From NCBI RefSeq assembly GCF_964204645.1, contig NC_134033.1, positions 12,780,655 to 12,844,654 of the forward strand: a stretch of DNA of 64,000 nt. Direction: 5' to 3'. Both the position numbers and the translations under genes were made by a program. The notes below the pieces were generated by a model. It worked only from the letters and a program-made list of their open reading frames with translations. It had not been told where the DNA came from and ran no database searches. The number at the start of each line of letters is the position of its first letter. Within the stretch, counting starts at the first letter, position 1. This document shows, piece by piece, positions 56,601 through 62,600 of the stretch. This DNA comes from Tubulanus polymorphus. Its lineage: Eukaryota; Animalia; Nemertea.

Positions 56601-59600
56601 ACAACACTCCAAATTAATTCATTTTCATGCAAAAATTTCCAGAATTTCGGAAAAAATTAATAAGATTTTTTTTGTACAAACGACATAAAATTCATTTTTT
56701 CATTGTACTTAAGTTTACAAAAGTACAATAATAAAAAAAAAAAATAAACCGACTAAAAAGCACTTCAACACTTCCACAACACCACATGCAAGCAAGCCAA
56801 TAAACTGAGAGCACCATCCTCGTTCATTTGAAAACAAAAATTGGATTCTATCTAACAACGATATCAATTCTCATCGATCTTTCTTAGACAAGAATGAACA
56901 ATCTCAAGGCTCTAATATAAACTTTCAAAATCATTCCGAAATATATATATATATCAAGTTTCATTCATAAGTACACACGCACCTGGGGCCTCAGGTAAAA
57001 ATCTGCTACTTGTTTTCAAGTAAAAATGCCCTCATGTCAGACGGACTATGGACGCCTGTCTTGACAATAATTTTTGTAGGGATGGAAATAGCTGGTCGAT
57101 TGTCAGAAGGGTGGGTACTGACAGCAGATTGTCTGAGGGGGTACAGGGTACAGACGACAGATTGTCTGAGGGGGTACAGGGTACAGACAGCAGATTGTCT
57201 GAGGGGGTGCAGGGTACAGACAGCAGATTGTCTGAGGGGTACAGGGTACAAACAGCAGATTGCTTGAGGGGTGCGGGGTACAGACAGCAGATTGTCTGAG
57301 GGGAGCAGGGTACACACAGCAGATTATCTGAGGGGGTACAGGGTACAGACAGCAGATTGTCTGAGGGGTACAGGGTACAGACAGCAGATTGTCTGAGGGG
57401 TACAGGATACAGACAGCAGATTGTCTGAGGGGTACAGGGTACAGACAGCAGATTGTCTGAGGGGTGCGGGGTACAGACAGCAGATTGTCTGAGGGGGTAC
57501 AGGGTACAGACAGCAGATTGTCTGAGGGGTACAGGGTACAGACAGCAGATTGTCTGAGGGGTGCGGGGTACAGACAGCACATTGTTTGAGGGGGTACAGG
57601 GTACAGACAGCACATTGTCTGAGGGGGTACAGGGTACAAACAGCAGATTGTCTGAGGGGGTACAGGGTACAGACAGCACATTTTCTGAGGGGTACAGGGT
57701 GCAGACAGTAGATTGTCTGAGGGGTGCAGGGTACAAACAGCAGATTGTCTGAGGGGTACAGGGTACAAACAGCAGATTGTCTGAGGGGCTGCAGGGTTCA
57801 GAAAGCAAATTGAAATGAATTACAAGTATGTGAGTACTTCTTATGAAAGATTCTTGAATACGATGGTTACTTTTTTCTATCATACATCGACGTGTATCTC
57901 TAATAATACGTATGTCTAATACCACGAGGTACATGCCGAGCTCACAATGAAAGCGTTTCTACCTGACGACACTGATGAGTTGTTATAAGCATCACCACCG
58001 ATGCTGTAGAACGTACCTGCCGACCCCGTAGATCCTGTATGCATCAATCAAAATAATAAATACATCATTAATTACTTATTACAAAAAAATATTACGCGTT
58101 TTGACCACATATTATATGATAGCAATAGAGGGCATCAGGGGCAGATCCGGAAAGTTGGGTTCACCAGACGTGAAAACGTTATAGTGCCGGTAAGCGCCAG
58201 AGATGTGAAGCGTTTGTAGGAGGCTTTGGGGAAACCCCATAAAATTTAGGTACATTTTTACGCAATATTAGTTAATAAAGGAATACTGTGGACTTTCGTA
58301 ATAAATCAATGATGGGTGGAATTTTCCACCTGTGATTTTCAAAAAGGGTTCGAACCCTCGAAATGATTTTCGTTTTGTCTCGGGACTTTTATCACTGTTT
58401 TTTTGATTAATCGATCATTGATTACTAATCATCAAGCATTTCTAATAACCCATGACCTCAAGCGCTTCAAAATATTCTACTAAAAGCTATTGAATCTAGT
58501 AAAAAGTTCTACACCAAAAAAAAAGAAGACCGGCCACAATTTGACCGATCATCTTCATTTCTACACTGGTGAAAAAAGATTTTTTTAAAAGAGAAAAGTG
58601 TTAAATCGTAATTCAACTGCTCCTACAGGTCAGTATCTATAAGCAGTTAGGTGCGCTGAATCAAGTCCAACAGAACATGTGTATCTTAGAAATTGGAAGC
58701 AGAAATATTAAAGGCATTTTGATTGAAGGATTGATGAATAAAGAATGTCCAGTCTACACTAATGTATCGCAGGATGGAACTGTATCCTAATACGGGTTAT
58801 AGGCCTAACGTTCGTTACCGGAAGTAAGTATCAGTTTTCGCGACAGCCAACTACATTTCAATGAAAATCCGTCAGTTCAAGTTTCCAGGAAGCATTTTCT
58901 CAAACAATTGGGAAATCTTGGAAAAGGTGAGTGCGTGTATAGTTTTTGAGAAAATGCTTACTGGAAACTTGAACCGACGGATTTTCATTGAAATTTAGTT
59001 GGTTGACGCGAAAACGGTTACCTACTTCCGGAACGAACGTTAGGCCTATAATCCGTATTACAGGTGAACTAAATGACAAAATATGAATTAGGAATGTACC
59101 AAGAGGCCCAGGGGGTGGACTGTTTTGGGATCAGGGATCATCAGGAACCAGTAACTGAGCTATCACTTAATCCATCGGTGGGTCGTTTGAACATATTTTG
59201 AGGTATGGTCTTGAGTATTTAAAGCGGCTTCAATCGAACAACTTAAGACTACAGGCTTAGAGTCTATGGAACTGGACCCAGGGGCCGGTTCCATAGTCAT
59301 GGCTTAGACTTTAGACCAGTCTTAGACCATCAAAGTTCTATAGCCAATCAAACAACTTAATAACCAGGGTCCAGTTCCACAGTTCTGAGTTAAGATTTGA
59401 CCCTGGGTTAAAACATTGAAAATGAACTAACTTTAAATCAGAGTTATCTCTAACTCACAACTGTGGAACTGGGTCCAGTCTTAAGGACTTATGTCTCGAC
59501 TATAGAACCGGGCCCTTTCCTTGAGTTGAACAGATTTCTGAATGATCTGGGTAGAATTTCAATCTATGCGTAATAGAACTAGGGACACACCCCTGTAGTG

Positions 59601-62600
59601 TAGAAAGGGCTTCATTCACTAAAGCTAAGATCTTCTAAACAGAACACACACAAATAACCGAATCCTTACCTGTTGTTCCCGAAGAGCCTTTTTGAGTAGT
59701 AAAAAAATTAAATAAGAAATAAATACAATTATAGCTCCAGGCATTTTATCTTTTTCTCGTAAAAATCATCAAATTGACGACAGCGGTTTTTGTTTCAAAA
59801 TGAATTAAAGCATATTTTTACTTTTAAACGAAATGAGCATTTTTTCGAACCCCTGGTGGTTAATTTACTGAATGCACAACTGATAATAGAATTAACAGTG
59901 ACTGAAATGAACGACATGCAATCTTCTCGTTTTAGTTATCAAAACTGAGCGTTAAAAAAAAAATTCTGAATTCTGTTGTGGTTGAAATTCTGAGCTAGTC
60001 GCGCCGGGTTCGACCGATTCAGGCATAGTTTACTGTTAACTACAAACAGTTCTAATTGCCTATTTCTCAAAATTTCAAAGTTACAAAGAAGTTTCTGACA
60101 TTTCGCTAGAATTGAAGGAGTTTCAAGCACCTATAAAAGCATTTTCCATTTAGAAGCGGAGACCCTGTGCAATGCTTCTAAGATTTGTGTTTGATCTAAT
60201 TTCACTTGAAAGCATTCGAGTTCAGAAGAGTCTACTGTATTTCATTTTCTTAAAGAACCGTGAATCTAGGCTTCTAAAATCCAAATTAGTTCATTTTGCA
60301 CATTTCGATCTCCAGCTCAGAATTTCAATTGCCCACAACTGCATAACATTCGAGATTTTTTAGGCATGCAAAATCGCTTGCTTCTTTCTTCACAATCACG
60401 TCTAAATCGAACATGCAAAATCCTCATTAAAAAAAAAAATTAAATCTCGAATATGATGAATTCTAATACTAATTCTCTTATGAATGAATATTTTTTTCAC
60501 GAGTTGAAATAAAAATTATAAAACATACTAACAAATCACTAGATAACGAATAACGACGAAATCTATTTGAAAATAAAACATATTCTACTTAACATAGTTT
60601 ACTATGAAACTTGGGTGAGAACATCCTACCACCCCCCCCCTACCCCGCCGCAGGGATTCGAACCCGATGGCATCGAGACTCACCACGGTACGAAACCCTG
60701 CCACACTAGACCGGGCTCGCAGCTACACGCGCAGCTTAGATGATGTCATTATTAGCCAATCAGAAATCCCGTTCTATTTTAGCCTGGGTTTTCCATTCTA
60801 AGTTTACCCGTGAAATTTGCCTCAGCGATTAATTAATTCCAAAGGCAATCTGATTTTCCTTGTGGCAAACCTACACTTGTAGACAGGGAGGATGCGAAGG
60901 GAGGAAGGGGTGAGGGGGATAAGCCCTATCTACCTCATGGGAAATTCTCTGAAAAAAATCCCTATTTTTCCAGGGTTTATAACATTCACCGCTAAACCAT
61001 TGTTTGCCATGTTATGCAGCAAAATTAAACTTCTTTCCAATTTAGCTTTTTTTTTGATGCCGTAAAAACCGAGGACGTGCACTACGCCATCAATATATCG
61101 GGGTTAGACTGGTTGCCCGTCAATTCAATTCAATTATCGATATATTCAAATTCAAAATAATTTTTGATATTATACAATTCATATCATACTATTTGTTGTC
61201 GACAATATTAACCAATATATGTATGTGTTATTTTTCAAGGCGCCAATAACCTTTCAAGTTAGTTTTCTTGTTAATGTTTGTAATCACATCTCGGCTCAAC
61301 TGAAAACTTGAAGCTAAATATTTACAATACACGTCGAATTTTTTTTCTTTTCGGCGCCGAATCTGAAGCCATGCGTTGAGTTAATCGCGGCAGCGAAATC
61401 CGCGTATAGTACGTACAACATAACAACAACAACGGTTTGAGGTAAAGATGGAATGACGGAAATAAACTCCTCGATGACAAGATGTTGGGGAAACACAACA
61501 AAAAATCCGGGGAAAACTAAACGAAAACAACACAAACGACTACGATACTGATTCTTTCATCTCTTGTGTGAATAGATGCAGTACTTACCAGTCGATCCGG
61601 TGGAACCTACGTTCATAATTTCATATTATATATATTATTGACATTGAACTTGCATTTGAATGATCCTATAGTTCAAATAAACTGACGTTCGTATTCTATA
61701 TGATTTGAGTAAGGGACGATGGAACTCGCGTTCAAATACTTAATTTAATCGGTCAATTGAACCAACGTTCATAATTCTATATAACAGAGTACCAAAAACG
61801 AACTCGCGTTTAGAAATATGTTCGGGAAGTCAGCTGCAGTTCTGGAAATATGAGTGATATTCGGAACGTAGACCTAGTGATGTACATTGGCTTCTGTCGA
61901 CCATAAAACCTGACATAGTTCCTATTAATTAGACTTAAAAAGATTTTGTCATGATTTTCAGCTTGTTTAACGTCTGATCTGCCTCACTATATACGAGTTT
62001 GTTGTTTGTTTTGACGTAGCCTGCCAAAACCCCTGTACTGCAAGATACTCAACCATTCAACTCTTACTATCTCCGAGCTGAAGTATAGTATAATTGTACT
62101 ATCCAACAATGGTAATTGCTCTCAAGACCAACAGAACGTCTACAGCACGAAAGTATCTGACTTGAGTGGAGACTACAGGCTCTCTTAACCCTTTCAGTGC
62201 TGACTAACCAATACCCTATAGTGCTGGAGATAATTTGAAAATTTTGAAAAATTCCGCCCAAGTGTGTTGAATACCACTAAAGTGTGTATACACCGCGGTG
62301 TGGTGTATTGTTAGTTACTAATATTTCACTTTGTTGGACAGGTGCTGCCATCTTTCAATAGAGATAAAAACTAATTACTAATTACATCAATACATCGCAG
62401 TGCGGTGTACTAGCAAAATCCATCACCGATTCATACACCGCACTGCGGTGTAGATGCACTGAAAGGGTTAACTGTGAGGCTTCTCAAAACTGCGAAAACT
62501 GAAAATGAATTCATCGTCGAAAGATGACTTTCTTAACTACTCACTCAAAGGTTTCGATATATTTGTCATGTATTTCGATTCGTCTTTGTCTTTTCCGGAC

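Follow-up and report, generated by a model that had tools for sequence, protein, structure and literature searches.

Can one intron of a kinase gene hold several similar microexons that are spliced in singly or together, and what would such a set do to the kinase? The question is raised by a stretch of 64,000 nucleotides from the palaeonemertean ribbon worm Tubulanus polymorphus (NC_134033.1, positions 12,780,655 to 12,844,654; hereafter the window), where an intron of 6,961 nt in a PAK gene contains three segments of 18 nt, here named m1, m2 and m3 in the direction of transcription (Table 1). The original prediction, made from the sequence, regarded them as hidden paralogous microexons, each adding one G-S-[TS]-G-[ST]-[TA] unit to the linker behind the autoinhibitory region. 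The three exons are real, deeply conserved and already present in NCBI models, and they are so far confined to one phylum.

The host gene codes for a group I PAK with an N-terminal proline motif, a CRIB/PBD and autoinhibitory domain, a PIX-type proline motif and a C-terminal STE20 kinase domain. Protein searches led to the RefSeq PAK isoforms of T. polymorphus, and the exon preceding the intron matches the 268-Mb genome of this species at one place only. Pfam places the PBD in that exon (E=3e-10) and the kinase domain in exons further downstream, and the exons coding for the CRIB and the N-terminal proline motif both lie upstream of the window. The exon following the intron aligns weakly with the proline motif of PAK2.

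When the sequence was re-read, all three 18-mers were found at the predicted sites on the minus strand, with AG acceptors and the donors GTAAGT, GTAAGG and GTACGT, in phase 1-1 and free of stop codons. Their splice sites are canonical, their inclusion preserves the frame, and their length lies within the 3-27 nt of alternative microexons, as does that of the 24-nt counterpart of m2 in the nemertean Lineus longissimus. Segments of the form AG-18 nt-GT coding only for G, S, T or A occur three times in the intron; 2,000 dinucleotide shuffles held 0.0025 of them on average and never two or more. It must be noted that this filter was chosen post hoc, after the data had been seen, and the verdict on m1-m3 therefore rests on an RNA contig, RefSeq isoforms and the Lineus orthologs.

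Four public sequencing runs were aligned to positions 57900-63800. Run X1 displayed a flat, DNA-like depth near 21, and run X2 was RNA-like, with a depth of 135 in an exon contig versus 4-11 in intronic contigs. Contig 15 of run X2 (199 nt) joins 62544 to 58038 with 13 letters in between. These letters are the core of m2, the contig ends exactly at 58017, the short donor of m3, and the whole decodes exactly as 163 nt of the upstream exon followed by 18 nt of m2 and 18 nt of m3. Because of this exact decoding, m2 and m3 are spliced exons carried by one molecule from which m1 was skipped. The stop of the contig at the short donor would fit a branch between the short form of m3 and a long or unspliced form. 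Run X2 comes from an unspecified tissue and consists of assembled contigs, which give no inclusion levels. m1 was not among the listed matches of the four runs in this region, but contigs drop minor variants and its absence is not implied; the support for m1 consists of RefSeq models and conservation.

The 13 RefSeq PAK isoforms of T. polymorphus (XP_074657597-XP_074657610) run from none of the three exons to all of them, and RefSeq models of this kind rest on aligned transcripts. None is present in isoform X12, one in X10 (m2), X11 (m3) and X6 (a long form of m3), two in X9 (m1+m2), X8 (m2+m3) and X4 (m2+long m3), and three in X7 (m1+m2+m3) and X3 (m1+m2+long m3). A further cassette, h, is found in X1, X2, X5 and X13. 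Neither this cassette nor the second donor of m3 figured in the original prediction. The exons are thus not hidden, as had been supposed, since RefSeq already models all three. The predicted alternative and combinatorial inclusion is borne out by the models of both Tubulanus and Lineus, in which inclusion and skipping each occur, and m1 is skipped in contig 15. Mutually exclusive use, with exactly one copy per transcript, is ruled out by m2 and m3 on contig 15, by all three in X7 and by none in X12; the exons were thereby shown to be included additively, with no strict either-or choice. The notion of uniform steps of six residues was incomplete, given the 10-aa cassette h, the 24-aa form of m3 and an 8-aa m2 in Lineus.

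Table 1. Exons and elements of the Tubulanus PAK intron and its surroundings (positions in the window), with the Lineus counterparts of the microexons (positions in locus L008).
Feature	Position	Strand	Evidence
Alternative first exon of a CRIB-less PAK: start codon at 63417, peptide MPYKDDDK, donor in phase 0, 5' end past 63800	63394..63800	-	RefSeq X13, run X2 contig 16
Constitutive exon with phase-1 donor: PBD (C-terminal half), inhibitory switch, kinase-inhibitory segment	62545..62707	-	Pfam PBD, 1F3M_A alignment, spliced in run X2 contig 15
m1: 18 nt, phase 1-1, xSTGST	61589..61606	-	RefSeq X1, X3, X5, X7, X9, X13; Lineus ortholog 14/18 nt
Cassette h: 30 nt, phase 1-1, hydrophobic 10 aa, weak GTTAGT donor; not paralogous to m1-m3	60533..60562	-	RefSeq X1, X2, X5, X13
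m2: 18 nt, phase 1-1, xSSGTT	59670..59687	-	Run X2 contig 15, RefSeq, Lineus ortholog
UGC 9 nt 5' of the m3 acceptor; candidate eMIC/Srrm234 element	58041..58043	-	Sequence, also at -10 in Lineus
m3, short form: 18 nt, phase 1-1, xSTGSA	58017..58034	-	Run X2 contig 15, RefSeq X5, X7, X8, X11, Lineus ortholog 12/18 nt
m3, in-frame 54-nt extension to second donor (GTAGAA), giving a 72-nt exon of 24 aa	57963..58016	-	Open frame; RefSeq X1-X4, X6, X13
Constitutive downstream exon: S/T/P-rich linker, acidic patch, PIX-type proline motif, IARPDK at end; phase-1 acceptor	55390..55583	-	Translation, all 13 RefSeq isoforms
Lineus m1 ortholog: xSTAST	L008 26529-26546		14/18 nt identical
Lineus m2 ortholog: xSSGSGTT, 24 nt, internal 6-nt tandem	L008 35618-35641		15/18 nt identical after one tandem copy removed
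Lineus m3 ortholog: xSSSSA	L008 38512-38529		12/18 nt identical

Lineus longissimus is a pilidiophoran and belongs to a nemertean class other than that of Tubulanus. Its orthologous intron (17 kb) holds three one-to-one orthologs in the same order, and its isoforms contain none, m1, m3, m1+m3 or m2+m3. The best Lineus match of each Tubulanus exon is the positional ortholog, with 14, 15 and 12 of 18 nt as opposed to 10-12 for the others, and the score of m1 was matched by 0 of 500 shuffled Lineus introns. Synonymous-biased change in the orthologous intron of a related species had been proposed as a check, and it is found here: third codon positions hold 10 of the 13 differences between orthologs (P=0.0016), which indicates selection on the peptide. 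The first four bases of each exon are also kept in both species (GTTC in m1, GCTC in m2 and GATC in m3). The predicted hexapeptide motif describes the Tubulanus exons and does not extend to m1 and m3 of Lineus, where position 4 is Ala or Ser. Cassette h has no counterpart in the Lineus intron, nor does Lineus have a long m3, since the equivalent read-through meets a stop.

Similar microexons were not found in the orthologous intron of Owenia (687 nt), Lingula, Liolophura, Argonauta and one further animal locus (L004), a set that includes an annelid, a brachiopod, a chiton and an argonaut. The junction of the Tubulanus isoform that skips all three exons resembles that of Owenia. Since orthologs are present in both nemertean classes and in none of the other loci examined, the trio appears to be nemertean and to predate the split between Palaeonemertea and Pilidiophora, which took place several hundred million years ago.

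The same junction is varied in other spiralians, by a 15-nt alternative donor in the chiton, a 3-aa variant in octopods and duplicated alternative exons in Lingula. In the loci examined, the length variants of chiton and octopods are not separate microexons. The two similar exons of Lingula anatina (L007, near 5968 and 7041; xYNITLK... and xYNTTPT...) follow the same intron position in different isoforms and are probably duplicated, mutually exclusive exons. In Argonauta, the constitutive downstream exon has at its 5' end a stretch (L012, about 81855-81880; xSSSSSV) that is like Lineus m3 in DNA, a likeness that could hint at a microexon origin from that exon end or could be low-complexity chance. 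An optional insert of 9-12 aa, hydrophobic as cassette h is, occurs at the same PAK junction in a spider, a tick and a horseshoe crab (P0337, P0341, P0314), and a Mizuhopecten PAK (P0239) carries an alternative N-terminal segment with tandem S/G/Q/R-rich repeats at a position unrelated to the nemertean exons.

Are the three exons paralogs, as was predicted? In Tubulanus they have 11-12 of 18 nt in common, are equally long and are identical at all six second-codon positions, their differences falling at third (13) and first (6) codon positions. Permutation of the codons within exons gave modest support for in-register similarity in this species (P=0.034 for amino acids, 0.018 for the first two bases). 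The simplest account would be that one 18-nt exon was duplicated in tandem long ago, in stem nemerteans, and we consider it probable. Three observations weigh against it. The same permutation was not significant in Lineus (P=0.34 and 0.12, respectively), the flanks of m1-m3 showed no similarity above shuffles at 60, 150 or 300 nt, and the splice-site consensus partly determines both the Gly at position 1 and the CAG at the end. Of the predicted origin, the in-register similarity in Tubulanus stands, and duplication is unproven because the flanks share nothing. The exons may instead have been exonised independently of one another and have come to code for similar G/S/T peptides under the constraints of splice sites and disorder, a smaller but still appreciable chance. 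Such convergence would agree with the dissimilar flanks, with an identity among the copies of no more than 10-13 of 18 nt and with the unrelated means by which chiton, octopods and Lingula alter the same junction. It would leave unaccounted for the common length of 18 nt, from which the Lineus 24-mer departs by its internal 6-nt tandem, the Ser at position 2 in six of six exons, the Gly that each Tubulanus exon has at position 4 and the in-register permutation (P=0.02-0.03). A repeat origin of m1-m3 was rejected: the exons lie outside the dispersed repeats of the intron and the m1 region is single-copy in the genome. Four degenerate local units of GAACG..GTTC lie at 61600-61830 on the minus strand, the last of them forming the m1 acceptor.

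The upstream exon aligns to the PAK1 autoregulatory chain 1F3M_A, which we take to comprise residues 70-149, as far as the KYM motif, and the insert lies after the end of this alignment. It enters five residues past the Thr that follows KYM; this Thr is aligned to the serine of PAK1 KYMS and is here presumed equivalent to the autophosphorylation site Ser144. The alignment supports the predicted site, with the autoinhibitory region before it and the PIX-type proline motif after it. In PAKs the PIX-binding proline-rich sequence sits between the autoinhibitory and kinase domains (PMC10017488). With none to three short exons the distance from KYM to RPDK is 67, 73, 79 or 85 residues, and up to 113 with h and the long m3; the number of Ser and Thr in this interval rises from 19 to 31 with three exons and to 37 with h and the long m3. 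The first two bases of the exons are kept in both species, and the junction codon is read as Ser when m1 or m2 comes first, Arg when m3 comes first and Asn when all are skipped. Both species have an annotated form with m3 first, in which the junction reads K-x-x-R-x-S/T. PAKs prefer basophilic patterns of this type, and the m3-first form would create a candidate site. Short matches of the G/S/T stretch to RecA fusions were rejected as low-complexity; such constructs presumably carry engineered linkers.

That m1-m3 fine-tune PAK regulation by cell type is the reading we favour, at about even odds. In this case the additive cassettes would lengthen the disordered tether that links the autoinhibitory module to the part of the protein with PIX-binding motif and kinase, the included exons would add phospho-acceptors beside the kinase-inhibitory segment, and the first included exon would set the junction residue to Asn, Ser or Arg. 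Activation threshold or PIX coupling would then be expected to shift modestly, and the kinase would not be switched on or off outright. The linker is predicted to be disordered, the insert region being the one of lowest confidence in an AlphaFold model (predicted local distance difference test, pLDDT, 27-33) and without secondary structure. One may speculate further, and only tentatively, that the triplicated microexons form an additive splicing dial, by which the cell type would set tether length and phospho-patch, the m3-first form would gain an (auto)phosphorylation site and kinase activation would be graded. Two points count against a regulatory role: the AlphaFold model is weak overall (predicted template modelling score, pTM, 0.37) and unsuited to fold searches, and six residues may matter little because linker length varies so widely among animal PAKs (53-96 residues from the 5th to the 95th percentile).

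The same variability, in sequence as well as in length, would be expected if the exons are real but near-interchangeable filler, kept in frame, small and polar by selection and giving a mixture of isoforms without a regulated role. We give this limited credence. The m2+m3 path survives in run X2, suggestive of broad inclusion, and position 4 and the length of m2 have drifted between Tubulanus and Lineus. Against mere filler, three separate exons, their introns and their order are retained in two nemertean classes, the first four bases are conserved exon by exon, and skip-all and single-exon forms are annotated in both species.

It seems unlikely that the exons form a neural microexon switch under the control of the eMIC domain of Srrm234, by which neurons would obtain a PAK linker of their own. 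The genome encodes an SRRM_C/eMIC-like segment (PF15230) in two neighbouring exons (G000:C2:27842320-27844731, minus strand; 23.2 and 20.4 bits, each just under the cut-off alone), which is a probable Srrm234 microexon regulator in this palaeonemertean. A proximal UGC and an upstream AG-free zone are features reported for eMIC targets (PMC8797185; bioRxiv 10.1101/2024.09.17.613571). A UGC precedes m3 at -9 in Tubulanus and -10 in Lineus, and the AG-free zones 5' of the three exons measure 38-45 nt and 69-148 nt, respectively. However, neither species has a UGC within 40 nt of m1 or m2, AG-free zones of similar length also precede the flanking constitutive acceptors, and one would not expect exons confined to neurons to form the surviving m2+m3 path in a run of unspecified tissue, except in a neural sample. 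Chance intronic sequence or an annotation artefact is hardly credible: m1 was not seen in the RNA alignment and RefSeq isoforms are computed models, but m2 and m3, for which this reading is refuted, are in a spliced RNA contig and all three exons have Lineus orthologs.

The nemertean exons can be set beside known systems. Vertebrate PAK3 occurs in four variants, depending on whether exon b (15 aa), exon c (21 aa), both or neither is spliced in; these exons insert at residue 92/93, within the PBD and autoinhibitory domain, and render the kinase constitutively active (PMC10017488). In both cases a group I PAK has neighbouring exons in its regulatory half that can be skipped, but the nemertean exons follow the inhibitory segment in another intron and are shorter, polar and mutually alike. 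Identity with the PAK3 event was rejected, the insert lying beyond the end of the 1F3M alignment. The mini-exons of LAR-RPTPs (PTPRD meA1/meA2 and meB) are neighbouring frame-preserving microexons for which a combinatorial code has been proposed (PMC10883964). The nemertean set is likewise small, combinatorial and frame-preserving; the LAR-RPTP exons lie in extracellular Ig domains and alter ligand binding, in contrast to three similar units in an intracellular disordered linker. With the neural microexons of the eMIC/SRRM3/4 system, m1-m3 share a length of at most 27 nt, preservation of the frame, a signalling gene as host, the conserved proximal UGC of m3 and the presence of an eMIC-like gene, and they differ in that m1 and m2 lack a proximal UGC. 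Substitutions derived from tandem exon duplication involve homologous tandem exons that are old and conserved (PMC9741552). Those exons replace one another, whereas the nemertean copies are co-included, m2 with m3 in RNA and all three in RefSeq, and therefore act additively.

The remainder of the locus offers further observations. The alternative first exon that starts isoform X13 (493 aa) is situated after the CRIB exon and before the constitutive upstream exon; the isoform lacks the Nck-type proline motif and the CRIB, keeps the inhibitory switch and may be a PAK form unresponsive to Cdc42/Rac. Contig 16 of run X2 spans 63393-63800, with 29 more letters beyond the donor of this exon. A Lineus counterpart of the MPYKDDDK exon was sought and not found; PAK annotations of Octopus and Mytilus also include CRIB-less forms, with the N-terminus MPESW. 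Minisatellites lie within the PAK introns at 57100-57780, 53830-54270, 55090-55350 and 51500-51890. The first two (period of about 29-30 nt) apparently belong to one family in opposite orientations and give spurious open reading frames. Dispersed repeats, about 290 nt long and present in the genome in many copies, occupy 62185-62471 and 58790-59060, the latter being palindromic and resembling a miniature inverted-repeat transposable element.

Microexons have mostly been studied in vertebrates and flies, and few are common to both lineages. No description was found in a literature search on PAK1 microexons, nemertean microexons and duplicated combinatorial microexons, a search outside of which most subscription papers fell. 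The weight of the finding is limited by the presence of the exons in the RefSeq models of both species. What is added is a phylum-level spiralian case, with three similar microexons in one intron, present in two nemertean classes and included additively, which bears on whether exon duplication seeds microexon clusters. With zero to three units it also provides a natural series in which a possible effect on kinase output can be related to the length and Ser/Thr content of the linker next to the inhibitory segment.

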